This document shows, one piece after another, positions 8,905-50,700 of a stretch of 64,000 nucleotides of DNA (its first letter is position 1; the number at the start of each line of letters is the position of its first letter). The stretch is taken from assembly GCA_050084985.1 (NCBI GenBank), contig JBITNC010000001.1, forward strand, positions 163,556,001 to 163,620,000, given 5' to 3'. The position numbers and the translations under genes were made by a program. The notes under the pieces are model-generated. The model did not search any database and was not told the DNA's origin. It saw nothing but the letters and a program-made list of their open reading frames with translations. The DNA comes from Nageia nagi. Its lineage: Eukaryota > Plantae > Pinophyta.

Positions 8905-9692
8905 TGTTAGAATTTGTAATGAAATATTGTGAATATCTAAACCCCTTGTAAATTCAATTAATCACTTAAAGGATATTTAGATACCTTAAGGGATTAATTG
9001 AATTCTTTATTATGTAAACTTTGACCTTACCAAGTGGTTAGTTGGTAGGTTAAAGTTAGGTAATATATTTATTGTAACCCTAACCTTACCCTTGGGTTAA
9101 AGGGAGGTTAGGGAGGTGCTCTCATGCTATAAATAGAGGGCCTCTCCTCTTGTAATATCACTTAGATTTTGAGTAAGATTACTCTACTAGTTTGTGTAGG
9201 AGAGAAAGGAATTTGTAATGAAATATTGTGAATATCTAAACTCCTTGTAAATTCAATTAATCACTTAAAGGATATTTAGATACCTTAAGGGATTAATTGA
9301 ATTCTTTATTATGTAAACTTTGACCTTACCAAGTGGTTAGTTGGTAGGTTAAAGTTAGGTAATATATTTATTGTAACCTTAACCTTACCCTTGGGTTAAA
9401 GGGAGGTTAGGGAAGTGCTCTCATGCTATAAATAGAGGGCCTCTCCTCTTGTAATATCACTTAGATTTTGAGTAAGATTACTCTAATAGTTTGTGTAGGA
9501 GAGAAAGGAATTGTTGTAAGAGGGTGCATAGTTTGAGAATTGAGATCTAGTTGTGGATGTACTCCCAAGGAGGGAGGAACCACTTATATTGGTGTTATCT
9601 TGTGTGAATGGTGTTATTAGCTTGTAGATGTTGAATGATTAAGTTTCATATAGTATTGGACCTTGAGGATTAGTGTAGGTCTAATTCCTTCA
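8905..9692 (+). repeat. 5' LTR (788 bp; contains a 299-bp tandem duplication)
   Basis: Starts TGTTAGAATTTG and ends CCTTCA. 8910-9208 is repeated at 9209-9507; TATA-like ctataaata is present twice. Confidence 0.95.
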
Positions 9693-9694
9693 AT

Positions 9695-9706
9695 TGGTAT
9701 CAGAGC
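9695..9706 (+). promoter_or_regulatory. Primer binding site (tRNA-iMet)
   Basis: TGGTATCAGAGC 2 nt after the LTR-terminal CA. Confidence 0.95.
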
Positions 9707-12700
9707 TTGGTGTGGAAGCTCCTTCAACATTCTTTGAAACTTCTTCAATTTGGAGGTCTCCATTTCTCATCTTCTTACATTGTTGAGGTAAAACATAATA
9801 GAAGGTATACATTTTTTACCTTCTTGGTTAATTATTGAATAATTGTATTTTACTACTAACATATTGTGTGCTATATGTTGACTATTGTTGAGCTAAATAT
9901 GATTAACAATTTTTGATACTAACCTCTTTTGTGAATAGCGTTTTTTTGCAAATTGCTTATTTGCTCATTATTTAAGAGGATAGTATACAAAAATTAAGTT
10001 AAAGAATTTCTTTCAATTTTATTTGTGAGAAATAACTTCTTTTACTAGCACAAAGTAAAAAGGAGAGATACTATTATCTCAAATGTTTATTTTTTTTTAA
10101 ATTATGTTGGTAAATTTATTTTGCAATTTATTGTACACCTTACAATATATCAAAAAAGGGGAGGGAGATTTATGATTACTAAGCTAATACCTTCACTTGA
10201 AATACATTATTATCTAAAACTTTATTTACAATAATTTGAAAACCTACTGCTGAAAAATTTGGATTTTACAGAGGGCAGAATAACGTTGCCATCTTCGAAT
10301 GGAGAAAAGGGAGATGGACTTCTGGGAGAGGTTTGTCTGCTCCTTGGTGTGACTAATGCCGAACTAGATGCAGATCTCATTAGAAAAGAACTACTCCATG
10401 CATTACTCTGAATCTCCCCTAGCCCCTGTTTCGGCTTCCCATCCTCTTCCTTACCTGACAACTCATATCCGATTTCATCGATGTGCTCCGAACCCACACT
10501 CAAATCGCATTCTCGATATCGGATGCCCTCTAGATGCTAATAAATCCCATTCGATTGAAGATCTGCAAGCTTAAGTTTTGCCCATTAAGACCAAGTGAAT
10601 GTCAAAGCCATATCCAATACAATCATCTTCAAAGCTCAGGTTTAAGAAGAGGGGGTGGGTATGGAGAAGGTAAAAGAGATGGAGTTGGAGATGGAGAGGG
10701 ATGACGATAATGTTGGGAATGCTGGAAACATTTTTTATCTTGGATTGGTGGGTGTTATCACATTTATAGGACATGGATGTTAAAAATGTTGGTGATGATC
10801 ATTGCCACAACAAGTCCCAATCCAATTGGTTGCAGCCAAATGCTACCTCTACCGTCACCGCTCCACAACCAAATGCTATTTGTAGCTTCACCTCCTCTCT
10901 CACTATAACTTTACACACCTAGGAGAATCCCTTATCTCTCCTCCCTCGCCAGTTAGGGTCAATGATCATCCCACCTATGAATTCCAAACTTGTGGTGAAG
11001 GCCTGGGAGCGTTCTAACGGATCCCTTCTCCCTCCTCCCTCGTCGGTTGCATCATCTCCCTCCACTCGCATTGCTTGGCCTCCTTCCCTTCATGGCCCTC
11101 TACCTACACCTCCTAACCTCCTTCATGTTGCGTGATCTTCTCTCACTTTTTTTAAGATGGAGGCCCTTTCTTGTTTGTGCATTTAATTTTTTGTTGACTA
11201 CTTGCATATTCTTAAATGCACATGCAAAGCAATGTTTACTCCTTCTTGGTAAGGGAAGGGTAGCCATCATTATTTTACCTAAAAGCATTTATTTTTTTGA
11301 CTTGGAGTATTTTTTTGTTTACTTGGAGTGTTTGAGGTAAAAGTAGCATTAACTATACATAGGTCTCCTTTCTTTTTCATTAATACTTGCAAGCTTCCAA
11401 GAAGCAAATGTATACTTTTTGGTAGGCATTTAATATTTTTTGCTTGCAAGTCATTTGTTCCTATTAAATGCACTTAGAAGTACTTATACTCCAACTTTAA
11501 GCATTGTCATGATGAATATAATACTTTAAAGTAAGTAGATACATCATTACTCTTCAATGCTATCCAATTTTTTAGAAAAATGTGGCAAATAAAGTTAATT
11601 CTTTAGGAGTATTTTTTTATTTGCCTTAAATACTTTTAAGTTTGGCAATTTACTTAGGTAAATGATAAATATTAGTGTAAAATTAACACTTTAAGGGATT
11701 TTTTTTACCTAAGTATTTTTTGTTAATGATTTCATGTTTCCTAAAAGGGAAACCTATGCTATTTTTTAAGTAAACAAGGGAAATTTTTTACTTAAAATAT
11801 AAATGCATACTTAAAAGACAATTTTTTAGCATACAAGTTTTAGGGATAAAAATTTAAGTAAAAAAAGGGGGGAATTTGTATAGTTTTTTACTTAAAACTT
11901 TATCTAGATCTTGCATGCTAAATTTGTAATGCATGCCTCTTAATCTTGTGTAGGAATAAAGCATGCTTAGTACTTAAAATTTTTAAGTTAAATAATGCAT
12001 TTTTAATAAGATAAATGATGCATGTTTATTACTTAATTTTTAAGTTATGGAATAATGCATGTTTAATTTTTTAAGTTATGGATTAATGCTAAGTAGGACT
12101 TAGCCTTTTAAAATTCATTAAAGTGTTGAATGAATTTATGAACTTGAGCAAGTATGCAAAATGTAAAAATGTCCTTTAGGGGTTAGTACAAAACCCATTG
12201 GACTCTTATATTTCAAGTTCTTGTGGATGATGTATTTTTAATACTTTACTTTATATTTTTGCATAATTGCTTTATACTTGCAAAAATGCAAAATATTGAA
12301 AGTAACCCCTAAAATGAACACATCCGCATGTACTTTTCCACAACATGACTTGTTTGGGGAGCCACGAGGGGAGGACAGGGTAGACTGGAGCCTTTTTAGT
12401 CCAAAGAACCAAGTGGTGGTAAATTCATCTTAATTACCCCTAAGACCTCTGTTGGATTAGACATAACTCTATAAAGTGGACAAACATGTGTGTAGTGATA
12501 CCACATGTCCGCACATCCATTCAGGGATTATCCTGATAACCTAGGAGGAAAACTTGAAAACCTTAAACAAGATAATTAAAATGGTCAGTCCAAGATACGT
12601 CGAATCCTTGGAAAATAGTTGGTACTTCTCCTTGAGAGAGTATATTACTGACCAAGATGAACTGGTTGAGGACTAGTAGTACTTGGGCTCCACTTTGTGA

Positions 12701-12877
12701 ACATCCAGGTGAAGGCCTAATTCTATACAAGAAAACAACCTCAACTTTATCCTTCTACGGATCTTGGTTTATAAGTTTGCACATGTGGGACATGTTTACT
12801 TATCAATGTTTGATTTGTATAGATGGTAAATTGTAGAAATTTATTCATTCTTCTTGCTTATTTACTTTTGTGTAGCA

Positions 12878-15800
12878 ATGGTTGAAACCTTCATACCCAA
12901 GCATATACTCGACAGTTCCAACTTCGGCATATGGGAACCTCATATGAAAGTTGAGTTACAAGCAATAAAGCTGTGGTAGACAGTTAATGAAGACTTGGTC
13001 GCTCCTACAGATGAGAAGGCTCTTGAAATCTACAACTCAAAGAATGAGTTAGCAACTTCAATGATTTATCATGCTATTTCAGATGACGTACTTCTCATGA
13101 TCTCTTCTTCAACATCAGTAAAGGAAGCTTGGGATAGGCTGAAGAAAATTTACCTTGGGTCAAAATTTTCAAGGAGGTTCACTATTTTACAAAAGTTGTT
13201 GCAATATCGTCAAGGTGAAGATGAAAGTGCTTCTATTTACTTGACCAAAATCATTGACCTCAGGACACAACTAGTTGGCTGTGGGTGCAACTTGATCAAT
13301 GATGATTTCATGGTCTTCATCATTCTTCAAAGCCTTTCTATAAAGTTCAGTAACTTTGTCATGGTTATGGAAACTAGGATCGATAATGAAGAAGATGTGA
13401 TCTCTCTTGATAACCTTTCTAGACTCCTTCTGAAGCATGAGGAAACTTTAAATAAGAAAATGTTGAACTTTTCTCCAAAGGACAAAAGCATTGCTCTAGG
13501 AGCAACCAAAACTCCTTTCAAGAAGAAGTTCAAACATTATAAATTCAAAGATAACAAATCCTCATCTACCTTCAGGAAGCTTGAGAAAAAGGGCAACAAT
13601 AATGGCAAATTCAAGCAAAGGAATGACAAAACTGGATCATGCAATCCAAAACCTAAGGAAAAGTTTGATGGAAATTGTAACTTTTGTGGCATATTTGGTC
13701 ACAAAGAGTATGATTGTCGTAAAAAGAAATTTGCAAAAAAAGGCAAGGGAAATGCAAATGTGAAAAATTTCAATAATAAAAAGAAGAACAAGCATGCTGC
13801 TATGTTGCCTACTACTCAGTGACTCAAACTATTTCAAATGATTGGATTGTTGATTCAGGATGCACTAATCACATGTGTTATGAAAAGGATAAGTTTGAAA
13901 ACTTTCATAAGTACAAGAAGGATGCAGTTGTGATAGGTGATAATTCAGTCCTTGATGTTCAAGGAATAGGGAGTGTGAAGATTCATGGAAAGGTTCTTGA
14001 TAATGTCTTTTATGTGCCTAAACTAAGGATGAATCTTATCTCCGTAATTCAGATTACAAGGAAAGGATACTCATTTGAGTTTACCTCACACTCCTAGTAT
14101 GTTAAGAAAGGACTTACCACCTTGATGAAAGGATCAGTAAAGGATGACCTTTATATTGTGGATCAAGTTCCTTCAAAAATGTGTCTTGCTACAAATGTTT
14201 GTTCAAAGGGTAATCTTTGGCATCAACGATTAGGGCACCTTAACCACAAGAGTATTCAAGATATGAAAAATCAAGAACTTGTGGAAGGTTTACCTAATAT
14301 TTCACCCATAATTGGTATTTGTGAAAGGTGTATTCTAGGAAAGATGAATAGGCAAAAGTTTGAAAAAGATAAGGCAACTCAGGCTACTCATCCTCTTCAG
14401 CTTGTGCATTCAGATTTGATGGGTCTATTTCAGACTAAGTCTCTAGGGGGAGCTTCTTATGTTCTGACCTTCATTGATGACTTTAGCATGATGACATTTG
14501 GTTATCTACTTGAGCACAAGGATCAAACTTTTGATAGGTTTAAAGACTTCAAGGCTCTTGTTGAAAATCAAATTGATTTTAAGATCAAGATGCTGAGATC
14601 TGATAATGGGGGTGAGTATAATAGCAATGAGTTTAATGACTATTGTGTTAAACATAGGATCAAGCGAAAATTCATAATCCCTTACACCCCTCAACAAAAT
14701 GGAGTTGTTGAAAGGAAGAATCGAACCATTATGGAAATGGCAAGGTGCATGTTGGGTAACCTTCCTAGTTTCTTATGGGGTGAAGATGTTCACACTGCTA
14801 TTCACACCCTAAATAGGTGTCCTACTAAAGCAGTTGAAGGTAAAACTCCATATGAAGCATGGATAGGAAAGAAACCTAACATCTCACACTTTAGGGTCTT
14901 CGGTTGTGATGCATTTGCCTTCATTATCTCAAAGAAAATAAAGAAATTAGATAAAAGATCAGAAAAATGCATCTTTGTGGGGTATGATAATCAGCATAGA
15001 GGTTATAGGCTCTACTCCTCATCCCATAAAATAATCTTTATTTTTAGGGATGTCAAGTTCAATGAACTTCCTAAGGATATGACTTCTCATGCTGAGGTGT
15101 TTGATTCAGATGATTCTTTTCCTACACCTAACTGGTTGGATGATAATGTAGGGAAGTCACCACAAGAGCAAAATTCTCCAGCTCAGAGAATTACAAGGAG
15201 TATGACCTTGAATAAATCTTTATTTGCCAAAATTGATAATACGAATGAGCCATCAACCTTCAAAGAAGCTTCCAAGCAAGAGTGTTGGATGGAAGCTATG
15301 AAAGTTGAGTATGAGGCGCTCATGAAAAATGAAACTTGGGATTTGGTTCCTTATCCCAATGAGAAAAATGTGATTGGAAATAAATGGATATACAAGGTCA
15401 AGTACAATTCTGATGGAGAAATTGAAAAATACAAAGCAAGGTTAGTGGCCAAAGGATTCGCTTAGAAATATGGTATTGATTATGAGGAAACCTTTGCTCC
15501 TATGGCCAAGATGCCTACTGTCAGGATAATCCTTGCTCTTTCTGTAGCTCAAGGATGGAAAGTTTTTCAACTTGATGTCAAGAGTGCATTTCTCAATGGT
15601 GACTTGGATGTAGAAATCTACATGAATCAACTAGAAGGATTTATTCTAGAAGGTAAAGAGTCTTTTGTGTGCAAGCTAAAGAAGTCTTTGTATGGACTTA
15701 AGCAAGCACCTAGAGCATGGTACAAGAAAATTTTAGGATTCTTTACAGATATTGGTTTTTCCAAGTGCTTCTCTGACTCAGATCTCTATGTACTCCATCA

Positions 15801-16794
15801 AGGAAAAGACATGGTCTTAATTCTCCTTTATGTGGATGATCTTCTCATAACTGGTAGTAATATTGAAACCATCCAAGAGTGCATATCCAAACTGAAGGTA
15901 ACATTTGAAATGACTGATCTAGGTCTATTGCATTACTATCTTGGGATGCAAGTATACCAACACAAAGATTTTACTTATCTTAGTCAATCTAAGTATATAT
16001 CAAACATCTTGCAAAAGTTTGGAATGGAGGAGTGTAGATATGCTGCAATACCTATTTCTCCTAGGATCATTATATCTCTGAGTTCAAATTCTTAGTTGGC
16101 TGATGCTACAGCTTATAGGTAATTGATCGGTAGTCTTCTGTATCTGACTATCTCTCGACCTGATATTACCTTTGCAATGAATCTGATGGCATGATTCATG
16201 CAAAAACCATATGTTGAGCACCTCAATGATGTTAAGCAAATCTTGAGGTATGTGGCAGGGACAAAGGATCTTGCTCTTAAGTATTCCAAAGTGCCCTCGA
16301 TTGTTCTCTTTGGGTTCTCAGATTTTGATTATGGGGGAGATAGAGATGATAGAAAATCAACCTCTGCATATGTGTTTAGCATTGGTTCAAGTGCTATCTC
16401 TTGGGATTCTAAGAAGTAACCTACTGTGACTCTTTCTACCACCGAATTTGAATATCAAGCCATGTCTGTTGCCACCTAGGAAGCTATTTGGTTGAGGCAT
16501 CTTCTGAACGAAATTGGGTATGAGCAAAATGGCCCATCTCTTATTTCTTCAGATAATCAATCAGCTATCTCTTTGGCTAAGAATCCTGTGTTCCATTAGA
16601 GAACCAAACATGTGGAAATCCAAGCCCATTTTATCAGGGAGAAGGTTCTAGATGACATCATACAGTTGGAGTATTGTCCATCTACTGTAAACTCTGTTGA
16701 TTTATTCACCAAGCCCCTTCCTGAAGCTCAGTTCAACAAGCTTAGGGATTCTCTCGGGTTGGTGAAGTTGCCCTCAAGGGGGAGTGAAGTTTGA
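12878..16794 (+). pseudogene. Copia gag-pol polyprotein pseudogene (about 9 premature stops plus 1 frameshift)
   Basis: Gag MVETFIPKHILDSSNFGIW; CCHC knuckle CNFCGIFGHKEYDC; protease WIVDSGCTNHM; GAG-pre-integrase LWHQRLGH; integrase VHSDLMG, LRSDNGGEY, PQQNGVVERKNRT; RT QLDVKSAFLNG, LYVDDLL; RNase H FSDFDYGGDRDDRKSTS, DLFTKPL. Confidence 0.95.
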
Positions 16795-16865
16795 ACTTTT
16801 GTTAGTGATGATAACTTCACCTCTAAGAGGCTCTTTTTTTGTTGTTATATAGTGTTGATTATGAT

Positions 16866-17160
16866 ATACCTTCGTGGTAAGTTTGCTCTATGTGAGAAAC
16901 TTGTTGTACATTTTATACCTCCATGGTAAGTTTGCTCTGCATGAGAAACTTGATTGTACATTTTATACCTCCATGGTAAGTTTGATTTACGTGAGAAACT
17001 TGTTGTACATTTTATACCTCCATGGTAAGTTTGCTCTGCATGAGAAACTTGTTGTACATTTTATACCTCCGTGGTAACTTCGCTCTATGTGAGGAACTTT
17101 TTGTACATTTTATACCTCCGTGGTAAGTTTGCTCTGTGTGAGAAACTTGTTGTACAATTT
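16866..17160 (+). repeat. 49-bp minisatellite, 6 copies, in the copia 3' region
   Basis: Unit atacctcc(a/g)tggtaagtttgctctgcatgagaaacttgttgtacatttt starting at 16866, 16915, 16965, 17014, 17063 and 17112. Confidence 0.92.
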
Positions 17161-17733
17161 TTTGAGCATATAATTGATCAATCAGTTTTATTGTTCAAGT
17201 ATTCATATGAGAAGATCTGGTATGTGTCTTTAGGCATTGTACAATCATCTATATGTTATGTTGTATTAATAATCAACACATGTCTATATACAACAGGTGA
17301 CTATGAGTGATGGCTTGGCATCTCCGTGATGACTTATAGTGCACCATTGATCAATTATTTATAAGATGGCATTATTTGATTCTCTTATTAATAAAATGAA
17401 TATATGATGCATCTAACTGATTTTGTTCATGAGTTGCTTGTAGCATGTAGGATCTTCTTCAAAAATGTAGGTTACTCACCTTGTGTAAGCAAGCTCATGG
17501 AGACTCACATGTCAGCTTAAAGTTGATCGACTACTATGTACAGTGAAACCAGTTGTGGTTAATGATTGTATTGTAAACCATTTCATCAAATGGTAATGTA
17601 GTGAGTCTCAAACTAGTTCTCAAAAAGATTCTCAAATATGTAAATGTTCTCATCTTCGCTTGTATCTCTATTGAGGAGAACTCTCTCTTACTCTCTCTCT
17701 TCTCTCTTCTACGCTCTATCCCAATATTGCATT

Positions 17734-17742
17734 AAGGGGGAG
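17734..17742 (+). promoter_or_regulatory. Polypurine tract
   Basis: AAGGGGGAG immediately before the TG of the 3' LTR. Confidence 0.92.
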
Positions 17743-18231
17743 TGTTAGAATTTGTAATGAAATATTGTGAATATCTAAACTCCTTGTAAATTCAATTAAT
17801 CACTTAAAGGATATTTAGATACCTTAAGGGATTAATTGAATTCTTTATTATGTAAACTTTGACCTTATCAAGTGGTTAGTTGGTAGGTTAAAGTTAGGTA
17901 ATATATTTATTGTAACCCTAACCTTACCCTTGGGTTAAAGGGAGGTTAGGGAGGTGCTCTCAAGCTATAAATAGAGGGCCTCTCCTCTTGTAATATCACT
18001 TAGATTTTGAGTAAGATTACTCTACTAGTTTGTGTAGGAGAGAAAGGAATTATTGTAAGAGGGTGCATAGTTTGAGAATTGAGAACTAGTTGTGGATGTA
18101 CTCCCAAGGAGGGAGGAACCACTTATATTGGTGTTATCTTGTGTGAATGGTGTTATTAGCTTGTAGATGTTGAATGATTAAGTTTCCTATAGTCTTGGAC
18201 CTTGAGGATTAGTGTAGGTCTAATTCCTTCA
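17743..18231 (+). repeat. 3' LTR (489 bp)
   Basis: TGTTAGAATTTG..CCTTCA, with a single copy of the segment duplicated in the 5' LTR. Confidence 0.95.
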
Positions 18232-27714: not shown

Positions 27715-28327
27715 GTAAGTAAGTAGGGCTGCAGGGCATCTTTTCTTCAACTATTTCTTTATTTCGGAAGTCAAAAGTCAGAGAGCAGTGTCATAATAAC
27801 TCATAGTTGGCATTTCTCTATAGTCTCGTAATATATTGAATTGAATTGCAGATCAGTCAGTGCGCAACAAGATTTTGAAGTTGATAAATTGCTTACTCTG
27901 TCCTTGTTTGATCATATCCAACTTCAGCTGTAGAAAAGGCTATTGGTAGCTATCAAATCTAGAGTGGTATTCTATTTTCTTGTCGAAGTTGCAAAGCAAC
28001 ATTTCTTGTCACCTTGGAAAGCTCCTATACAAAGTTTGTGGGCATCAATTTGTTGACAAATTTAGCTTGGTATTTTGAATTTGCAGAACTTCATGTTTTT
28101 GTCTATGAAGTTGTTATATTATACAATGAATGATTGTGATTAGACATGAAATCTTCTTTTCATGTTGTATGGTCCTTCCATTCTATTGGCTTACTTTCTT
28201 TTAATAGGTCTAGACAAACTTGATTCGCAGGTATGTTGAATATTTCATCTTAATCTCCATTGGGATTGAGCAAGATGTATGTACAGGCTGAAAAGTACTG
28301 ATATCTGTTCTCTGTGCTTTTTGGTAG
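27715..28327 (+). other. Predicted 5' UTR introns (27715-28207 and 28231-28327) flanking a 23-nt UTR exon
   Basis: Strong donors GAG|GTAAGT (27715) and CAG|GTATGT (28231). Pyrimidine-rich acceptors ttttaatAG (28207) and tttttggtAG (28327), the latter 8 nt before the ATG. Confidence 0.55.
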
Positions 28328-28335
28328 AAATCAAA

Positions 28336-30663
28336 ATGGCTCCAAAACATCAATATACATCAGATAATGGAAGTTCAATAATGTCTAGGCCTCTGGGTCA
28401 GTCTGAAGAGAATTGGGCAAGGATAACTGACCAGGGCACTGGCATTACTGCCTCTGGAATTGCTTTGAGGAGGCATGTAGAAGAAAATCAGATCACCATG
28501 GCCGTGCAGGACCTTATGGATAATTATGCCATTGCAAGAGCAACAATTATAGAGAACAACAAAGGTAAGCTCTATCTCCAAGTGAACGATAGTCCAGCGA
28601 AACCAATCGTAAAGGAGAAGGCATGGCCTAGTATAGAGGAACATTCCTATTTAGGTCTTCAAGGGGTCTTGGAAATCCATCATGATGATGAAAACCATTC
28701 TTTAAGCTTAGCACTGCACCAGGTTGTCCGCAATGAGCTTAATATTCCATTCCTGAATTCAGAAAAGATGGCAGCTCCTCCTCTGGATGTGTTGGAGGTT
28801 CATTTTTACAAGAATCCATCAGTGCCACAAACAATTGTCGTGATTAAAATCCACAGTGGTGCTTGTGATAGGCCATCCTGTTTTCTTGTGGTGGAGCATT
28901 TTCTTAGTGCTTTGAATGCTGTGGTTGAAGGAAGAAAGACCCAATTTCCTGATGCTCCTGGAAAGAATGAACTACTGTCTTCAATGGAGGATATCGTACC
29001 TAAAGGCAAAGCAGATAAAGGCTTTTTCACCAAAGGTCTAGATATCTTAGGATATGCCTTAGACTCCAAGAAGTACTCTCTGCTACCATTTAGTCCAGAG
29101 TTCACCAAGATGTCCATCAAGGCTGGCTTCATGTCCGACATTATCACATATAGTCTTGGAAGAGAAGGTAACTTATCTGGACATTTTTAACAGCTATTAT
29201 CCTTGTTCAATCTGGTTAGTTCTCTAACTGTTTTTGCCTTAGGAAAGAGCACAAAGAATAAGATGGGTTTGAAGTGATCTCTCTGAAGTGATTAAACATC
29301 TATGAACACAAAATGTTTAGCAGATTTTAATGTTTTCAAATGAAACTGTTAGTTTCAAAAGTATCGGAATTAAACAACATAGGAAGATGTATTTGAGCTT
29401 TTCATGTTATGAAATTATTAGCATGCCAAAAAATTGACCTACATAGAAAGTTTTATGTGTTCTCCATCCTTGGGTTGATGAGATGATTGATTAAGATCAT
29501 ATGAGTTGGGATTTCAATGAAAGTGATTCAAAGTTTACGTGGACACGTTATTTAGCAGATTTTAAGATTTCCTTGAGATGAAATTATTAGTTTTCCACAA
29601 CATTGACATTAAGCTACATGAGAATTTGTGTTTGCTCTTGATCCTTAAGTTGTTGAGTACATTGATTATTGATTATGATGATATAAACTGAAAATGTATT
29701 TGTACTTGATCCTTGAATTGTTTTAATTATATTGATTGTGATGATACGAATTGAAATTGTGTTTGCTCTTTATCTTTGAGTTGCTGAATGCATTGATTAT
29801 GTTGTTATGTATTCATGTACATGACAGGAACTAGTGCTCTCTTTTCTGCATGCAAGCAAGCGAACACAACTCATGCTGCAGCCCTTGCTTCTGCATACTT
29901 GCGAACAGCTGCCAACAACAAAGAATTGAAAGACAAGAAATTGAACCAGTTTTGCTTCACAGGGTAAAGTCCCTTCCTTTTCATCCAAGAAATTGGAATA
30001 TCTTTTCTTCTTTATGAGCAAAGTATAACAGTCAGTCCAATCCTTTCGTGTATGACAGTGTGTTAGACTGTAGACCTTATTTCGAACCTCCCTTACCACA
30101 AGGTGTCTTAGGAAACTACTCTGCAGGCGTATTACAAGGAGCAAAAGTAAACGATGACATATCGTTTTGGGATCTAGCTCGCCTAATTTCATCCAAAACA
30201 GAAACAGAAATCAACAAACATAAACACTTTTCGGAGCTACCAGTGCTTGCCATGCTTGTAGGACAGGTGATAATCAGGTCTCTTGAATTCCATACATCTT
30301 GCATATTCATTTTTTTGTAATTAAGAAGGGAGTTTAAATTGGTGGATGCAGGTGATGAAACGTCCAAGCCTGACACCCAGCTCATCCAAGAGATCTGGGT
30401 TGTTCACAATGTTCTTAGGAGAGCCTCCCAAGGCCGAGTTGAAGAATGTGGACTCTCTCAATGTGGCAGGGATTTTGGGACCTTTAGCAAGCATGCATGC
30501 AGTGGGTCCTTGCTTCTGTGCTTGTGAATCTTTGAGGGAAGGCCCTGACCTTTGCATCTCCTTGACATATGCAACTCCTGTCTTCACAAGGGATCAAATG
30601 CACTCCTTCGCATCCTGTGTGTTGGAATTGTTGGCCTCGGAGACATCATCAAAACGTCACTAA
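28336..30663 (+). CDS. Condensation-domain / CoA-dependent acyltransferase-fold protein (PapA5/alcohol-acetyltransferase-like, At3g52610-like family), 495 aa; exons 28336-29167, 29828-29963, 30059-30266, 30352-30663
   Basis: GT-AG introns of 660, 95 and 85 bp join 832+136+208+312 = 1488 nt in frame with no stops. Family motifs recognised from recall: RPLGQSEENW..GTGI, IHSGACDR, MEDIVPKGKADKGFFTKGLDILGYAL, LDCRPYFEPPL, FWDLAR, PSLTPSSSKRS, ASMHAVGP, YATPVFTRDQM. Confidence 0.88.
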
Positions 30664-31407
30664 AATCAGAATCTGCTAGTGTTGTGCGAACTTATTTGTT
30701 TGTTCAGTTATAATTTCCTTTGTACTTCCATTGATTCGCTAGAAATTAAGTTAAATTATCTGCCTTATACTGGCTGTCAAGTTGTTTTCTTACTATTGAT
30801 TTTGAATTAAATAGCATCTTTTCAAGGAAGTTTTAATTATCAATATCTCTTTCTGCAAAAGAAAGTAGTATATTTGAACCCAACTTTTCAGTCTTCACTT
30901 ACAAACACCGCCCGAGGAACTTCAAACTTGCAATGAACATTGAAGCATGATTTTAGACTCGTCTTCCCAATTTGATTCCTTGTGTAAAGGAAACATAAAA
31001 CAAATGGCAAAGAATTGCATGTAATGGTGATGGTGTAATGGTATAGACGTCTTTCAACCTTAGTAAGTTGCTTGAGCATGTGAAAAAGATGATTTGTTGG
31101 TTGACAAAAAAGTTACAGAATCCTTAACTTAGAAGGCTATTTTATATTTATTTCTCACATGGTCTCCACAAAATCCTTTAGTTGCAAGATCTATAAGTTT
31201 TGGTTATGGTCAAGCATAGTCATTTCATATTAATCTCGAAATGAATATTAGTTCATTTGTAAATAATCAATTATACATCTTGTAGTGTTATGATAAGAGG
31301 AGATGATCTAGTAGTTGTGCACTTCAATTTTATGCCTCTTAAAACTCGATATAATATTTGAATCACTCTAAATTTTTATAACTTCTTTCTTGTTTAGTTG
31401 TCTGTTT

Positions 31408-31610
31408 ATAATTAAGGTTTCGAATCGTCATCATCACATTTGATAGGTTAATTACGTGTAGTTGTAGAAACTATCCAAAACAACACTTTTCTAAGCTCAT
31501 ACCTAGCGGAGTCAATTACAACCCCTATCGTTAATTACACTTGCACTAATAGTTGAACGCTAATAACTAACCTATCAAATTTAATGATGACAACTCGAAG
31601 CCTTAATTAT
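31408..31610. mobile_element. 203-bp foldback / MITE-like element with ~47-bp terminal inverted repeats
   Basis: ataattaaggtttcgaatcgtcatcatcacatttgataggttaatta (from 31408) matches the reverse complement of 31564-31610 with 6 mismatches. TA or TTAA is available as a TSD at both ends. Confidence 0.7.
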
Positions 31611-33168
31611 CCTCTCCCCTAACTATCTTCTTGTTGTTTGATTTATCTATGATTTTGTTTAGTTAAAGTTTTCAATTATATTTTTCTAAGATACTACTTT
31701 TTTTTGTCATATGATATCAAAGTTTTCGTCACCTTTTATCTCAAAAGCAACTAAATAAGATTCCTTATTAAATTCTATTTTTCTTGAAGAAAAAATGATA
31801 AAAGTTATAGGCTCAAATTATAAAGTTCATAATAGATTATACATCTTGTTTGGATGTTACATACATTATGTCATTAAGAATTATTAATTATAAATACATT
31901 ATGTCATTGAAAATTATTAATTATAAAGTTAAAAGAGTAAAATTAACAAATTTTGGAATCTTGATCATAAAATTCATGGGGTATGATGGGGAAAATTAAC
32001 TTCAACTAGAATCAATTTAGAGTTTATCTAGAATCAATTTACCCTTTGTATGATATTATTTTGTCATTTTTTAAATTTGAGATATGTATCTTTTCCAAAA
32101 AATTACATATGTTTAGTTGTTTACTTATGCCATGCTTGACATGGGGGCATTGCCACTTTTGGATTATCTTGATACTTTAGAATAATTTATCATTTATTGC
32201 ATCGTTTTTAGTGTCGAAATATGATAGACTTTAAGATACATTTTTGACATAATATTATGAAAATAAATTTATCCACGTGATTAACCTTGAAATATAAATG
32301 TTTATTGTAACATGAATTAATTATATGTTATCTTAATTTTTTTTATAATATATTTTTCCTCTAAGTTTAAGGGGGGCATGTTGTAGTATTCTATATGACA
32401 TAGTAAAGGGAATATACTAACTTTCAAACTTTCTAAGACATGTTTGCTTATATGATGATTCTTTTTAGTTACAAGAATTTATTTTTCCAATATTAGAAGA
32501 ACTTGTGATATAACGAACATTTTTTGAAAAATGATGGTTATCATCAAAATAAATTTATCAAACAAGGGTTTAATAACATATAATTATATTGCAAATATAG
32601 AATGCAATTTACAAAAGGATATGCTTACCCCCTTCATAAAATCTTTAACTCCATCTATTGGTACAATTTACACTAAAAAAGGTCTTTAAGAGAGGTTTCA
32701 AATTTCCCTTAAAGATCTTTAATGGTAGTTATCCAACCATCATCTATGATGGTGTCGTAAAAACATTAGCACCCTACAATGAAAGATAAAAATCACCTCA
32801 AAAAATTATTAATGTTTATTATATGAAGGTGGTTTAAAACAATCACCTCATGGACCATAATGATTGTAGGGTATGCATAGAATGGTTTTCATGTACTGTA
32901 ATGATCACATGATATGCATAGAATATGTATGGTTTGGAGGCCCTCCGCATATATCTATCTCTTATAATATTGTATTCAAAAGAAATCCTTACAGTAGGGA
33001 AAGTGTATCCATACTCTCATTCTTAATTACAATCACCTAAGATTCAAGGAAGATGAATTTTTGCACAATACCCTTCTCCAAATGTATGTCAAGTGTGATA
33101 GGCTCATCAATGCTTATGGCATTTTTGATAGAATGATTAAGAAAGATGTAGTTTCTTGGAATGCAATG

Positions 33169-33640
33169 AAGTAATGTTGTACTAGATGAATCCATACTTG
33201 CTCTATATTTTTTCAATATTGGCCAACTTAGGGTCTCTAGAAGAGGGCATTGATATCCATTAAAAAATAATTAGAAGTGGTTTCCACTTAAATGTCATTT
33301 TGATAAATGTTATCATCCATGAGAATATGTTTTCTCTATTATTTTATCAAACAATATGCAGACTTTGTGCATATTTCCAAACTCAACAAACACACAGATA
33401 TATATAAAGTGATGTTGTACTAGATGAATCCATACTTGTCTATATTTTTTCAATATTGGCCAACTTAGGATCTCTAGAAGAGGGCATTGATATCCATTGA
33501 AAAATAATTAGAAGTGGTTTACACTTGAATGTCATTTTGATAAATGTTATCATCCATGAGAATATGTTTTCTCTATTATTTTATCAAACAGTATGCGGGC
33601 TTTGTGCATATTGCCAAACTTAAGATACACACACACACAC
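33169..33640 (+). repeat. Tandem duplication of a ~238-bp unit (sense PPR L-motif plus antisense PPR segment)
   Basis: aagt(a/g)atgttgtactagatgaatcc at 33169 and 33407; tccatgagaatatgttttc at 33316 and 33553. Confidence 0.9.
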
Positions 33641-33726
33641 ATATTTGTGTGTTTGTTGAGTTTGGGAATATGCACAAAGCCCGCATACTATTTGATAAAA
33701 TAATAGAGAAAACATATTCTAATGGA
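33553..33726. ncRNA. Candidate PPR-derived hairpin RNA / proto-MIRNA (inverted duplication)
   Basis: 33553-33640 is the reverse complement of ~33646-33726, with 3 mismatches in the outer 68 bp and a short loop around ATATTT. The structure is directly visible; expression is unproven. Confidence 0.5.
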
Positions 33727-34049
33727 CTACATTAAATGTAAGGTATGTGCAAATTGGGTTTCTTAATGAAATTGTGAAACTTTTTTATGGAAATGCCTCA
33801 AAGAGAAACAATCTCATGAAATGCAATGATAATAGGATATGCATAAAATAGGCATGGTTTATAGGCTCTAAAGTATTTTAAAAAAATGCAATTGATTCAT
33901 TTTAGACAAGATTGAATAGCCATTGCAAGTATTCTAGTCATATATGCAACTTTTACAACTTTAAAATGGGGGCATGGACATTCATGGTCAAACAATTAGA
34001 TGTGGGTTTGTTTTGCATGTAATTGCAATAACAACCCTAGTAGACAAGG

Positions 34050-34813
34050 GTTTTGTTTAGAAATATGCATTATGAATGAATAATTTTATAGATTGCAAGC
34101 AAAATATTATATAAAGAAGTCAAGCTAACCTCTCAGATCCAACATTAATGTGTCGAATTTGAACAAATTTACCACATAAAAAATTCTCAATGTTCAACTC
34201 AAACATTAACAATAACCTTGATAAAATTATTGTATACTCAACATATAACCAATAGGAGCATAAACACAACAAGAGTTTAACTCTCCCAAGATCTTAACTT
34301 GGCATTATCCATGTAAATGAAAGAACCAATGAACAACTATGGAGCTATACTCATACATAAATGAAGCAATAATTGAATGCTTGAAGTAAAACACTCTATT
34401 ATGCACCCACAAATGATAAGAAAAATTACAACATACTCTTTATGTATTCTGATAGAATACTACACTTTGCAACTAAGATCTCATAGAGCTATTTACTTTA
34501 CAATATGGAGTTCTCATCTATGAGAATCTACATGAATCTATATGCTCTACTACAATAAATAATCCATTATATAGATATCCTAGGCTACTACAATCCAACA
34601 TAGAAATCAACATAACATTGATCTTGTGATAAAATATGAAAGTTTCACAAAGTTAAACAACCTAACAAACTACTGAAAACTATGCAAACATGTAAAAAAA
34701 TAAATAAATATAGAAACTAACAAAATTCATCCACATAGTGTGGACACCCTAAAAATAGACATGCTATGGTGTGGCTATTATGGCTTTGAGAGAAATACAA
34801 CATTCTCCCCCTT
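34050..34813 (-). mobile_element. LTR (minus strand) with PPT, truncating the PPR pseudogene
   Basis: tacaaca (34802) followed by ttctccccctt reads AAGGGGGAGAA-TGTTG on the minus strand. PPR homology stops abruptly at ~34048. Confidence 0.6.
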
Positions 34814-35049
34814 GATGTTGAAAGAACTCAAGTTCAAAAGCATAAAAAATTGGTTGATTGATGTCGTCTTACCTTTCTTCTAGTTTTTAAGTAGAAAATT
34901 CAAAAACACAAAAAGGTTTTTACATTGGCACTCCTTTCTCTCTCTATGTGGACTATTCTCCATCAACTTTGCTTCTTCCTACAAATACACATTGAGTACC
35001 TTTTGATGATAAAATCCCCCTTCATAAAAAAACTCTTCAAATGATATTC

Positions 35050-37350
35050 CAACTATTGAAACTTAATCTTGGTCCACCTTAGGTGGTTTCATTAAGTGTT
35101 TTATTATGTTGATCTTATATCATGTTATTGGTGCTTTCTTGATCCTTTATCATGCAATCTTATCATTTATTATGTTAGGTACCCCAACATTGATGCTTGT
35201 ATTCCTAAGAGAAAATTGGAGGATATCTTGCATATATAAGGGTAAGTATGATTGCAAGGGGGAGTTATCAAGATTTCATCTCGATAGTCAGTACCTAAAC
35301 TATTAGGTGTTTCTCAATGCCACCTATTAAGATTGGGATCTTATTATCATATGAGCATATTTGTTAATTAATTTTTCATAATTATATGTTAGGGTCTACT
35401 TTTAGATCATTTGCTATGCATTAGATTTTGGTTGCAAACTCCATTTTTTTTGGATACCTAGCATCCATGCTACTATATACATTAGCTTTACTTTTTGGGG
35501 CTAAATGTTTGCACTCTTGTGGATGTTCGTGCTGCTATTCTAGCATACTATACTCTATGGGGATTTGCACATCAAGATCACTATCTTTGATAAGCTTCTA
35601 TTTGCATATAATCTTTATCATTAGGTAAGGTTTACAAGTATTTATCTTTCACTTGATTCTAGTCTCAATAACATATTTTATTATCTTGATCCAATAATAT
35701 AAGATTTGTTATTCACTATCATATTTACATACATTTAAATGATTATTATTATTACCATTTATATTTGTTTATCTTGGTGTAAAGAATACATCATCTACAT
35801 GTGAATGTTTAATGTAGTTTTTACTTAGCTCATACTAGGGTCACTAAAAATACATTTCTATATATAATGGATATAAATGTCATTTACAAAAATACAATTG
35901 ATCATTTGAAATGTATATGTGGGTCAGGAATCATGTGTTTCTTTATCAAAACTATTTTAAAATAATAAATTCTTGTTTGGCGTATGACAACCCTATGGGT
36001 TGGGGATTTAACATCTTGTTTTGGAATATGAAAACCCTATGGGTTGGGAATTTAGCATCTTGTTTGACTTTATGATTGTTATATATATTTACTGGGAAGA
36101 CATTGAAAAATTCCCATATTTTGGTATATTAAAATCCTTTTGGTTGGTCATTTAGCATCTTCTTGTTGGTTATATGACAACCCTTTAGGTTGGGCATTTG
36201 GCATCTTCTCTTTGGTAATATAAAAATCCTTTGGGTTGGGCATTTAGCACCTCCTCTTTGGTAATATGGAAACCATTTGGATTAGGCTTTGAGTAATCAA
36301 TATCTTTATTGGATGGGTTTAAACTAACTATCACTATGATTAATCTTTACAATTATATGTGTGCATCCATGAATGAGGTACTAGGTATTACTATGTCGAT
36401 TTTTATCTATGAATGGGATATTTGATGCTATCATGATGATGTATAAATATTATATTAATTTCATCCTTCCTCTTTATTGATATATCTTTTGAGATGAAAT
36501 GTTTGTGTATGAGTCCATGAATGGGATGCTTGGTTCTATTGTGATTATGTATATCCATGAATAGGGAATTAAGTGTTATCATGATGATATGATGCACTTA
36601 TGGTGATTATTTCTCTCATTACCATTACTATATCTTTAAGAGTTTTTATTATATATATATATATTTGAAAAGTGGTATTTTTTTCTCTCTTTTTTAGGTT
36701 ATTATTTTCTCTTGGTTATTCTTATTTATAACTATTCCATTTCATAATAAGGCAAAGAGGGGGTAGAAAATATCATCAACCTCTAATGATTGTATGAATT
36801 CACAAAAAAAACAAGTGTAAAATTTTTCTTTCCTTATTTTTTTTACTTCCTTAGCAAACATAATTACATTTCAAATTTCATTTCAATTCATTATATTTGG
36901 AAAGGGGGTATCTGTTGACACTTTATGGTCCACCCTTGGTACATCCTTATTAAGTGTTTCATTATGTTAACAAAATATTATATCATGCATGTTATATTAG
37001 TCCTTTCTCATGTAATCTCATCCTTTATAATGCTAGGTATCCCAACATCGATGCTTGCCTTCCTAAGTAGAAATGGGTAATTTCTCTTGCATATATAAAT
37101 GTAAGTATGATTACAAGGGAAGGCATCAAGATTTCATCTTGATAACTAGTACCTAAACTATCAGGTGTTTCTCAATGCTACCTATTGAGTTTGGGATCTT
37201 GTTATCACATGAGCATATATGTTATTCCATATTCTACAATTATATGTTTGGATCAACTTATCGATCTTCTTCTTTACATTAGATCTTGGTTGTGAACTCC
37301 ATTCATTGGGATACCTAGCATCCGTGTTGTTGTACATATCAACATTACTA
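35050..37350. repeat. Retroelement-derived duplicated blocks including a ~44-bp tandem repeat (35973-36290)
   Basis: Block ttaggtaccccaacat.gatgctt..cttgcatatataag occurs at ~35175, ~37035 and ~43310. Unit tatgacaaccctatgggttgggcatttagcatcttgtttgg is repeated. Confidence 0.7.
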
Positions 37351-37399
37351 TTCAATGTTACTAATATTTTCCTAGCCAATATATGAAGATATAAATGAG

Positions 37400-41300: not shown

Positions 41301-42194
41301 TTACTAGTGATCTTAATATTGGTATAACTAAAATGATCTCAATAACTATTGAGGGAAATCAAAAATTGAATGACACCATAAATTTACCAAGTGCACCTCC
41401 AACAGTTACTCAAACCTTAAAACTACAACTCTTCCTCTCTTGGACTAGAGCATAGATTGATACATTTGAATGTGGTAAATGAACCATGGTTTTCCATATT
41501 TATGATGAAATTAGGACATAATTTTTTAGACTATATAAAAAATTTATGGATAACATTGACAAAAATATTAAAGTCCTTAGAACTCAAAATATACATTATA
41601 ATAGAAACCTATTGTATGAATATACAAAGTGCATTTATAGTAAAACTTTGTATGAATGTTCTAGGTAGCATCAATGTTGATGCCAACATCAATGGACATC
41701 TATGCTAGCATTCATGAGTTATTTTTTAGACATGGGTTTTAGATTGGTATTGCTTGAGATGAGAATGATTTGAAAAATATTATAAAATGAGATATAGGAT
41801 AATCATCATATGTTGGTAATAGGGAACTAGAATTTCAATTTCAAAGTAAGGTCATTTAGGGAATGTTTTAGAATTATATGGTTGAGTTATCAGTTCAAAA
41901 TATTATACAAACAACAAATGGAATGATTTCAGTTAAAAATGTTCAGTTCCAACATGATTGAGAATAAGATGAGAAGTGCTAGTGTGGAAGGAAGCACCAA
42001 TGTTAGGGCATATATTTAATTGTCATCTTTGAATCACTTTAATTGGACTTGGGGGCATGCCCTCACACATATATCAAGAAAATTAATCTTTTATGAATTT
42101 GATTTTCCCTACGTGTACATTGATATGAACATGATATATTTAAAAAAGTGCTTATTTATTTGAGAAATTTGAAATCATTTGATATTTGAAAATA

Positions 42195-43930
42195 TAAAAT
42201 TCTTATTTGGAATATGACAACCCTATGGGTTGGGTATTAAGCATCTTGTTTGGGAATATGAAAACCATATGGGTTAGGTATTTATCATCTTTTTTAGGAA
42301 TATGACAACCCTATGGGTTGGGCATTTAGCATCTTGTTTGGCTTTATGATTGTTGTATGTCTTTAGTAGGAAGATATTGATAAAATTTCATATTTTGGTA
42401 TATTATAACACTTTAGGCTAGGCATTTAGCCTTCTCTTTGGTAATATGATAAAACTTTGGGTTAGGAATTTAATCACTTTATCTTATGATACATCCATGA
42501 ATGGGGCATCTTTTTCTACCATGATGATGTACACCTATGAATAGGGAAACTTTTTTCTTCCATGATGGTGTGACCTTAATTTTCTTTCATTATCTTTTTT
42601 GGTTAGGTTTGAACTAACCATCACTCTTATTACTCTTTATGATTATATGTGTGCATACATGAATGAGGTGTTATGTATTACTATGATGATTTTTATCTAT
42701 GATTAGGATATTTGGTACTATCATGATGATGTATACATATTATATTAATTTCATCCTTGCTCCTTATTGCTTTGAGATGAAATATTTGTGTATGAGTCCA
42801 TGAATGGAATTATTGGTTCTATTGTGATGATTTATATCCATGTATAGTGAATTGAGTATTACCATGATATCAAGCACGTATGGTGATTATTGTTCTCATT
42901 ATCATAGCTATATCTTTAAGAGTTTTTATCACATATATGTTTGGAAGGCGCTTTTCTTTATCTCTCTTTTTCAGGTTATTCTTGATTCTTGGTTGTTTTC
43001 ATTCCATGAGAACCATTCCATTTCATAATCAAGGAAAAGAGAGGCCAACAAATATCATCAACCTTTGATGATCGGATGGCTTAAAAATAAAATCAGGGAA
43101 GTATCAATTTTTTTCTTTCCTTATTTTTTATGTTTCCTTTACAAACACAATTACATTTCAATTCATTATATTTTCAAATGGGGGGATTTTTTGATACTTA
43201 ATTTTGATCCACCTTAGATGGTATCATTAAATATTTTATTATACTAATATTATATAAAATTATTGGTGCTTTCTTGGTTCTTTCTCATGCAATATTATCT
43301 TTTATTGTGTTAGGTACCCTAACATCGATGCTTATATTCCTAACAGGAAATTGGAGGATATGTTGCATATATAAGGGTAAGTATGATTGCATGGTAAATT
43401 TATCAAGATTTCATTTCTATATTCGATACCTAAACTATTATGTGTTTATCAATACCACCTATTGAGATTAGGATCTTGTTATCACATGAGCATATATGTT
43501 ATTTCATCTTCCATAATTATATGTTTGGCTCAACTTATCAATCATATATTGTGTATTGTATCTTGGTTGTGAACTCCACTTATTTGGATGCCTAATGTCC
43601 ACACTATCGTATGTATTATCATTATTGTTCGAGTCTTAGCATCCATGCTCTTATGGGTGTTTGCACCACTATTCCAAACTGATATGCTTTGTAGGGATTT
43701 GCACATCAATATCACTATCTTCAATAAGTTCCTATCTATATATAATATTTTTCATTATGTAAATTTTATAGGTATTTATCTTTTACTTGATCCTATTCTT
43801 AATAGCACATTTTTTTATCTTAATCCAATAATATAAAATCTATTATTCACTCTCATATTTATTTACATTTTGATTATTGTTGATGTTACTATAGTTTCTA
43901 CTTAGCTCATGGTATGGATCACTAAAAATA
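42195..43930. repeat. Second copy of the 35050-37350 blocks, including the ~44-bp tandem repeat (42201-42470)
   Basis: Colinear similarity: 42195-43600 to 35960-37350, and 43180-43930 to 35050-35850. Confidence 0.75.
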
Positions 43931-47707: not shown

Positions 47708-50700
47708 TTGTTGATATGTGTTTTGGTAAACCTAGGGTTTTGGACTAATTGAAATAACTACACATAAACATTTAAATATGTAATAAATAAGCTATTTAAC
47801 TTAAATAAACATTTATGATAATAATAAATAATGGAATAGAGTATAGCAATAGTGTAATGATATAACTAAAGTTCTATCAAATCAAGATAACAAAATGAAA
47901 ACACACACTAAAGAGATGAAATCAAGTGTAAGATAAATACCTATGTATCCTTACTTATGATGGAGGTGAGTATATATAGAATGAACTTGTCAAAGATAAG
48001 TAACCTTAATGTGTGAACCCAATGATCAATAATAGCAAGAATCTTAGTGTGAGTGTTAGGTCTCAAGAGGTCAGCATGGGTGGGCATGCAAGTGTAAAAA
48101 CTAGCAATTTAGTGGAATGAGGTTCACCACCAAATATCGGTAACAACAATGATATTGAAAAGATGAGCCAAACATATGATCATAGAAATGGATGATAGAT
48201 ATGATCAAGTGGTAATAAGATTCCAATCTTAATAGGTGGAATTTAGAAACAACTAAGAGTAGGGTACCAAATATCAAGGTGTAATCTTGATCATGCCTCT
48301 TAAGGTTAGAGATACTTACATTATATGCATATGATATTCCATCAATTGACCCCTTGTAATAAGGTTGAATTCATCCTGATTTACCTAATATAAAAATAAG
48401 AATACAACCTTAGAAGTATGCGGTAATAAGGTAAAATATGATTAAATATGTTTATAATGTTACACCTAAGTGGGGCCACCTTAGAGGGACCAAATTTAGG
48501 TGTCAATAAATGTTCCCCTTTGCAAGTGTAATTAAATAAGAAATTTTAAAATGAAATTATGCTTGCAAAGGAAGTAAAAGATAAAGAGATGAAAATTTTG
48601 ATATCTCCCTAGTTTAGTTGTAGGACTATCCTAATCATCAAGGAATCATGATCTATATTTCCACCTCTTTCCTTGGTTGTGAAGTGAAATGGCTTGCATG
48701 ATGTATAATTGACTAAGAGAAAAGAATAATAGGAAAATAAGAATAACAAAAATACCAAACTCCAAGCATATATGTGATGGTTAACTCATAAAAAATATGG
48801 GAGTGATAATAAGAGTAAAGCATCATAACATTTCATTACAAATGATATAACATGTAAGAGAAAGGATAAAATTAATATAATATGCATGAATCATCTTGAG
48901 AATAGCAAATTTCCTATTCTTAGATTCATATCATCATAGAAATACTCAATGTTTCATTCTTATATGCATACATACAAGATCATAACACAAGTGTGTTAAC
49001 ATTATCATGGGGTACATGCCCCATTCTTAGATGAAACACATGCAATCAGGATCATATATGTCAACATCATCATGAGGTACATGCCCCATTCCTACATGCA
49101 ACATATGAATAATAAAGAACTATCACAGTGATGGTTATTTTAAACCCAACCAAAAAAGGTGGTCATATACATGTGCCATACATCATCATAAGGTACATGC
49201 TCCATTCTTAGATGTAGACACTATATGGTACCATTGCATGAGGTACAAGCTTAATTCTTAGATGTATGTATGTCATGAATAATGTGATTTCTATGGCCAT
49301 TAGCATGATTATTGGTTTAGTGCTAGTCATCAAATTGACCCAAAAGATCTAGTTGGTTTAGCACTAACTAAGTATTTGATTATTGTAGTAATTAGTGTGT
49401 GGATTGGTTTAGTTCCAATCAACAAACTAACCCAAAAATATAATTATAGTACCTTTGATATTGTGACCATTATAATGATGATTGGTATGGTCCCAATTAA
49501 CTAACTAACCCAACAAATTGGTTGGTGTGGTTCCAACCAAGTAATCATAAAATAATGATGGTTATTTAATGTCTACCCAATAAGGACATGATATATCAAG
49601 CAATGTAGTGTAATCATAACTAAGCATCATCGAAGTGAATTAACATTCATGTATTCATTATGTATGGAAAGATAAGGAAATAGGAAATAATACATGTACT
49701 TACCTTTGATGAATTGTTTGATTTATTTCAAGAACGCTAGTGCAAGTGCTGATGTTGGTGTGAATGCATACGGGAGCATGAATGTTAGGTTTTATAATAT
49801 CTTTATAAGTGGAAATATTTTAAGATTGAGATACTACTATTGTGAGCTATAAGATTTATGTTTGGTATCTAGAAATAATGCTCATCATTCTAAGGCATCA
49901 CTTGTACAACTAACTAGACTTGTTCCATTGTATTAGATAAAACAACTAATTGAACTTGATTTACTATTTTCAACTAACCTAACTAACATGTTTTTGACCC
50001 TTTATGTATATAATTTATACTAAATTATAAAATGTGCCAATAATGCTAGTACAAATGCTAGGATACATGGATAATTTTACATAGAAAGCTAGCATGGATA
50101 CTAGCATAACAAAATAAAAATGGAGCTAGGAGATTGATAAGGGACCTTTGATCTAATGGCTGATTGAAGTAGAGCTACTACAAAATATGTTAAAAGATTC
50201 TCTTATGCATAAAAGGGCTTGAGGTGTTTGGAATTGGTTAAAAATTTATCCATTTTTCCCTCAAGTGTTACTAATCTATATGCTCCATTGGGGTATTTTA
50301 TTTTGATGATGTATGGACCCATCCAATTTGTTTCAAATTTACCTTTGTCTTCCTTTTCATCTTGTGATTTGTGATGGTTCTCTTTGAGTACTAAGTCACC
50401 CACTTGTAATTCCCTTAGTACAATTTTATTTCCATATGATTTCTTAACTCTTCTTTGGTAAGATTTTAGATGTTCTAGGGTATGGATTCATTTTTCATCC
50501 AATCCTTCTAAATGTCTCAATCTTGCTTTTCATTGTTGTTCCTAATCAATGGTGCCTTCTTGAGACACCCTTAGTGATGGTATTTCTATTTCTAGTGGTA
50601 TTACTATCTCATCTTCATAGACTAATGAAAATGGTGTGCATATTATGGCTGATCAGATGTTGGTCATATATGCCTAAAGTACATATATGAGTTGTGAATA

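Follow-up and report, generated by a model that had tools for sequence, protein, structure and literature searches.

The window analysed here, the whole stretch of 64,000 nucleotides of Nageia nagi DNA, contains an apparently intact gene (28279-30663, plus strand) located 2.9 kb upstream of the hairpin described below and on the same strand. The first ORF of this gene, 303 aa in length, shares 78% identity with Ginkgo Gb_29731, 77% with Taxus chinensis and 71% with Cryptomeria; these identities place the genome among the gymnosperms. The ORF has no Pfam match of its own, and more distant homologues in ferns and liverworts carry PF16911 (PapA-type acyltransferase C-terminus). A Ty1/copia LTR retrotransposon occupies 8910-18047, with gag, integrase and RT ORFs at 12995-16095. 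Its LTR blocks of about 300 bp (8910-9209 and 9209-9508 in tandem, and 17748-18047) are 98-99% identical, and the element looks recently inserted, with two LTR blocks at its 5' end; a tandem array of 49-bp units (16853-17198) lies inside the element near the 3' LTR. Other repeats include a MITE-like small palindrome at 31405-31613 (47-nt arms, 87% complementary, 109 nt apart), a tandem array of three copies of a unit of about 186-189 bp at 56715-57364 (62-84%), and a block of about 1.6 kb that is repeated two to three times with 65-89% identity (35056-36660, 36914-37353, 42139-43892 and 48827-48977). The halves of this block are swapped in the second copy, the piece at 48827-48977 is inverted, and arrays of 44-46-bp tandem repeats are found within it (35953-36290 and 42139-42483); these are probably fragments of one repeat family.

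The hairpin itself lies within the remains of a PPR gene, of which the following features were recognised.

32800-34060, plus strand: decayed PLS-class PPR pseudogene fragment (six-frame reading, Pfam, PDB matches, tblastn)
32848-32924, plus strand: older 41-bp tandem duplication of a segment coding for SWT.MI.GYAQN (78% identity)
33169-33633, plus strand: tandem duplication with a period of 237 bp, 2.0 copies (94% matches by TRF, and alignment)
33316-33401, minus strand: distal antisense arm (copy 1), 92% complementary to the sense arm, CpG lost
33553-33640, minus strand: proximal antisense arm (copy 2), forming the 5' side of the plus-strand hairpin, with a reverse complement that reads ..YLKFGNMHKARILFDKIIEKTYSHG
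33627-33641, no strand: loop microsatellite (AC)7.5 at the symmetry centre, followed by TTTGTGTGTTTG (TRF and fold)
33641-33726, plus strand: sense arm, the original coding segment of an S motif, which reads ..VFVEFGNMHKARILFDKIIEK.. and runs collinearly into downstream PPR sequence ..SWTTLNVRYVQIGFLNEIVKLF..

Pieces of the pseudogene that are readable on the plus strand include ..SWTIMIVGYAQNGF.., ..GKCIHTLILNYNHLRFKEDEFLHNTLLQMYVKCDRLINAYGIFDRMIKKDVVSWNAM.., ..ANLGSLEEGIDIH.KIIRSGLHLNVILINVII.., ..SWTTLNVRYVQIGFLNEIVKLF.. and ..ISWNAMIIGYAQN.., interrupted by stops and frameshifts throughout 32800-34060, where the longest ORF encodes at most 63 aa. Repeats of the P, L and S types are present, as in a PLS-class PPR gene, but the intact ORF with C-terminal E/DYW that such a gene would have is absent, and the sequence was therefore classified as a pseudogene fragment. 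No recognisable N-terminus, 5' end or promoter of this fragment was found by six-frame reading and tblastn, and no E/DYW remnants were found downstream at 34149-34880. A stop-free piece of 58 aa (32998-33171) scores 25.5 bits against the Pfam PPR model (cut-off 25), and its best PDB matches are a synthetic PPR-DYW protein (E = 2.7e-26) and PLS9-PPR (1.9e-22), with P-type designer PPRs behind; because PLS-type structures outrank the P-type designs, the PLS assignment holds. The reverse complement of the left arm of the hairpin matches the S motif of PLS9-PPR (E = 1.6e-6; Pfam PPR 15.8 bits), and thus both arms represent one S motif. The original prediction, made from the bare sequence, had placed the hairpin inside a dead PLS-PPR gene, and these results agree with it. 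No other PPR-like sequence was detected in the 64-kb window by tblastn of the pseudogene pieces. The exact products of five local ORFs are absent from a collection of 15 billion proteins, and a word-based protein search with the hairpin-spanning ORF and the best PPR piece, which sees proteins of similar length only, returned no candidate. The older duplication at 32848-32924 is a second small tandem duplication in the same pseudogene and marks the locus as prone to local slippage. At 33165-33170 the PPR reading leaps from ..DVVSWNAM to MQ.S.VVLDES.., with about 20 of the expected repeat codons missing; this jump looks like a small deletion and is situated exactly where the 237-bp tandem unit starts.

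The inverted repeat has arms of 81 nt each (33553-33633 and 33646-33726) that are 93% complementary and 12 nt apart, located where the original prediction had drawn a near-perfect fold-back. The sense arm and the proximal antisense arm mismatch at 6 of 81 arm positions (7, 9, 12, 20, 44 and 75); exactly three of these fall within the outer 68 bp, as had been counted before, and the small loop said to be flanked by (AC)n/(GT)n corresponds to the (AC)7.5 microsatellite. Similarity to the downstream flank of the sense arm stops at the left junction (33552/33553). Folding of 33540-33740 as RNA, the check that had been proposed for both strands, gave a strong hairpin on each, with an MFE of -115.7 kcal/mol on the plus strand and -113.3 on the minus strand, compared to a mean of about -35 kcal/mol for dinucleotide shuffles (z = -19.6 and -21.8, respectively). 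None of 200 shuffles folded as stably as the real sequence, and a fold with DNA parameters gave -77.6 kcal/mol (z = -20). In the RNA fold the hairpin is unbranched and 174-190 nt long, and the proximal hairpin is still the MFE structure of a 631-nt context, despite the second antisense arm. These models predict that a near-perfect RNA hairpin of about 85 bp can form on either strand.

In each 237-bp unit of the tandem duplication, an antisense arm, B', comes after a PPR segment in sense orientation, A (VVLDESIL..ANLGSLEEGIDIH.KIIRSG.HLNVILINVII). Since the antisense arm is contained in the tandem duplication, there is a second antisense arm at 33316-33401; this arm and the tandem duplication are both new with respect to the original prediction. 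With the sense arm denoted B, the present order of segments is A-B'-A-B'-B-C. The codons at the end of A (N-V-I-I(-H)) are equivalent to NALID of the consensus, and those at the start of B (I-C-V-F-V-E-F-G) to IDMY.K.G. Thus, A was directly followed by B in the gene as it originally stood, and B' came to lie between the two by insertion. The PPR reading on the plus strand carries on in the flank to either side (..NVILINVII on the left, SWTTLNV.. on the right), which places the inverted copy exactly between two formerly adjacent segments. Comparison of the junctions revealed no target-site duplication at the palindrome, and established no junction microhomology beyond a few bases. An origin of the structure in place, by inverted and tandem duplication within a dead PLS-PPR fragment, is well supported.

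This anatomy bears on two other accounts of the palindrome. It could belong to a dispersed family of transposable elements, having arrived as a MITE or foldback element or as PPR sequence carried by a CACTA or Pack-type transposon. This origin is very improbable and was rejected: arms and flanks all derive collinearly from a single PPR reading, the combination of terminal inverted repeats, target-site duplication and multiple copies was not seen in the window, the fragment is enclosed neither by flanking inverted repeats nor by CACTA-type termini (matching inverted ends plus a 3-bp duplication), and the palindrome has no second copy within the 64 kb. Searches of metagenome contigs, which are weak evidence as these collections are poor in plant DNA, gave 0 matches to a degenerate 28-nt arm pattern and, in a protein-seeded scan, 126 pattern matches of which 0 were confirmed. 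Palindromes with small spacers are also a known class of artefact in long-read libraries, and a fold-back chimeric read or a mis-joined palindrome would create one during sequencing or assembly. Artefactual fold-backs, however, are identical and extend to the end of the read, whereas at this locus 6 of the 81 positions mismatch between the arms, both arms stop at defined junctions beyond which the flanks are unrelated, and 237 bp upstream there is a third copy that has diverged on its own. With diverged arms and this third copy, an artefact is extremely improbable, and it too was rejected.

The divergence of the copies was examined for indications of age and constraint. The K2P distance is 0.078 between B and arm 2, 0.079 between B and arm 1, and 0.092 between arm 1 and arm 2; the three arm copies are equidistant, giving a star-like tree. 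Little time probably separated the inverted duplication from the tandem one, or both may belong to a single complex event. For the non-arm sequence that was duplicated along with the arm in the tandem unit, K2P is 0.036-0.061 (6 differences in 149 nt), compared to 0.078-0.092 for the arms, and thus the arms are not better conserved than their neighbour. Per lineage, as derived by hand, divergence is about 2.6% for the hairpin arms (outer 68 bp) versus about 2.0% for the non-arm part, a comparison of rates that comprises 6-7 substitutions per comparison at one locus. At the gymnosperm rate of 2.2e-9 per site per year (PMC13477047, PMC10473749), a K2P of 0.078 corresponds to about 18 My; the duplications are dated to about 13-18 My at this rate, and the age of the structure is estimated overall as about 10-18 My. 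It would be young on the gymnosperm scale, yet not newborn, as the original prediction had called it. Arms diverging at the neutral rate had been named in advance as a pattern that would speak against a small-RNA function, and this is the pattern observed, within one locus and on few substitutions.

The original prediction had also pointed out that both arms keep a CpG. The observed/expected ratio of CpG is 0.16 in the window, and two of the four CpGs in 32600-34100 are those of the arms, at 33596 and 33682, so that the retention of CpG in both hairpin arms is confirmed as an observation. The distal arm (33316-33401) has GCAGAC instead, with the CpG gone. As a signal of constraint the retention was rejected: a single CpG is concerned, it is lost in the third copy, and neutral decay would be expected to leave it in place in the other two.

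The plant MIRNA criteria of Axtell and Meyers 2018 reportedly require a foldback of at most 300 nt that lacks secondary stems in the duplex region, and a miRNA/miRNA* duplex with at most 5 mismatched positions, of which at most 3 are in asymmetric bulges; they are also said to require precise processing, with most reads from one miRNA/miRNA* pair, replicated in independent libraries. The hairpin, unbranched and 174-190 nt long, has the size and shape of such a foldback, and 67 of the 68 possible 21-mer windows pass the duplex rules. Because nearly all windows pass, no particular miRNA/miRNA* pair is singled out, and the hairpin looks like an hpRNA. Its arms (81-86 nt, 92-93% complementary, z about -20) have the structure of a source of hairpin siRNAs. 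A scan of both strands against Rfam 15 found no family at its gathering threshold, in accordance with the original remark that no known miRNA family was recognised in the hairpin. The sub-threshold matches were to MIR2646 (91.6/89.5 bits versus 245), MIR7993 (59.6 versus 100) and mir-3149 (48.4 versus 100); both strands score alike, indicating a generic hairpin effect and not membership.

The range of transcripts that small RNAs from the antisense arm might reach was assessed against the PPR units present in the window, all of them decayed paralogues. One of these, the S-motif unit at 33092-33169 in the same pseudogene, has 52% nucleotide identity to the arm. Among other PPR units, the best match of any arm 21-mer has 4 mismatches on the upstream side and 5 on the downstream side, and random sites of the masked window reach the same 4-5 mismatches on either strand. 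The S motif is conserved at the protein level but not at the DNA level, which would restrict the possible targets to the parent gene and paralogues very close to it. The original expectation that many PLS-PPR transcripts might be hit is not supported by this 52% identity and these background-level 21-mer matches. As for other plants, the eudicot precedent (miR161, which targets P-class PPR genes, and TAS-derived siRNAs) involves the P class and does not extend to PLS editing factors.

Inverted duplication of target-gene sequence is a model for the birth of MIRNA genes (PMC1790633, PMC4651229), and the original prediction was right that the hairpin, both arms of which are the same S motif, is an inverted duplication of PPR coding sequence of the kind from which the model starts. 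The locus might accordingly be transcribed, by read-through from the upstream plus-strand gene or from a cryptic promoter, and its product diced to siRNAs of 21-24 nt, of which those of the antisense arm would silence the parent PPR gene and close paralogues in trans, at an early stage of the inverted-duplication pathway. The structure is that of the first stage of the model, with a hairpin shorter than 300 nt that passes the duplex rules and stays the MFE structure in its 631-nt context. There are precedents in MIR161 and MIR163 of Arabidopsis (PMC1790633) and in the long stems of MIR482q-s, derived from NB-LRR genes, in spruce (PMC4651229), where miRNAs also cleave PPR transcripts and PPR genes are PHAS loci (Norway spruce; PMC4651229). 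Set against these points, the host is a pseudogene fragment with no recognisable 5' end or promoter, the arms show no specific conservation relative to the co-duplicated flank, and their complementarity to the window's other PPR units does not exceed background. Perfect duplexes are poor substrates of DCL1, and the initial products of foldbacks of this kind are heterogeneous siRNAs (PMC1790633); by this principle the hairpin is too perfect for precise processing of the DCL1 type. Overall, an active small-RNA locus of this kind is possible but unlikely. The regulatory reading may be considered a legitimate hypothesis of a known kind, weakened with respect to both a newborn age and many targets. 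It can be extended to the genome, by supposing that this hairpin and other PPR-derived fold-backs are expressed hpRNA or proto-MIRNA loci, the antisense-arm siRNAs of which dampen recently expanded paralogues among the PLS-class RNA-editing factors. Such a system is very improbable; if it existed, organelle RNA editing would be overlaid with small-RNA regulation specific to this lineage, and MIRNA birth would be seen at its very beginning.

The explanation favoured here, with a probability of roughly two in three, is that the hairpin is the ordinary scar of a short local rearrangement within a dead gene fragment of the PLS-PPR class, one that has drifted approximately neutrally and is most likely silent or functionally neutral. 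A reversed copy of an 86-bp segment that codes for one S motif (..IDMY.EFGNMHKARILFDKIIEKNIFSW) would have been inserted directly in front of the original, where the preceding repeat stops; template switching or fold-back repair in the course of replication is the probable cause. Tandem duplication of the 237-bp block formed by the preceding sense segment and the inverted copy would have followed at about that time, and all copies would since have drifted at an approximately neutral rate for roughly 10-18 My. Any read-through transcript would be diced to heterogeneous siRNAs, in the manner of an hpRNA, and not to one defined miRNA; its trans targets would be limited to very close paralogues of the parent gene, and the locus would most likely be silent or neutral. 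Silence of the locus is assumed in this account. Near-perfect inverted repeats, once transcribed, are efficient sources of siRNA, which counts against a silent locus, as does the finding that about one quarter of the pseudogenes in the gymnosperm Platycladus show transcripts (PMC13477047). Under the inverted-duplication model, drift and death are the commonest fate of such foldbacks (PMC1790633).

As it stands, the locus shows that repeat-rich PPR pseudogenes in giant gymnosperm genomes gain small inverted and tandem duplications. If it were expressed, it would offer a clean and datable snapshot of the first stage of inverted duplication, in which the donor, the two junctions and a second, competing antisense arm can still be read. 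Its setting would then be unusual, combining a gymnosperm with the PLS class of editing factors, for which such regulation is not established.

Among known systems, the inverted-duplication MIRNA loci of Arabidopsis (Fahlgren et al. 2007, PMC1790633) resemble this locus in having arms that are sense and antisense copies of coding sequence from a large gene family, with similarity along the whole arm, the family being PPR in the present case. Those loci are transcribed and DCL-processed and have validated targets, whereas the Nageia locus is known from its sequence; its stem is still near-perfect, which would correspond to a stage before DCL1, its sequence comes from an S motif of the PLS class within a dead pseudogene, and it has no sequence or Rfam relationship to them. 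MIR482q/r/s of Norway spruce (Xia et al. 2015, PMC4651229) are likewise long gymnosperm hairpins with an arm that translates to a piece of the donor family, but they derive from NB-LRR genes and not PPR genes, yield an abundant discrete miRNA and trigger phasiRNAs. The inverted repeat of CHS pseudogenes at the soybean I locus (PMC3859349) and the Tpd1 hairpin of teosinte (PMC11390486) are comparable as gene-derived, non-coding inverted repeats, a kind of structure that could give siRNAs against its own family; both are much longer than the hairpin described here, are expressed with a demonstrated phenotype, and have arms nearly identical to their targets. The A-B'-A-B'-B-C order, the tiny spacer, the central microsatellite and the junctions in a repeat-rich gene are like those of fold-back duplications that arise by template switching or break repair and are accompanied by an adjacent tandem duplication, and it is this anatomy that points to a similar mechanism for the Nageia hairpin.
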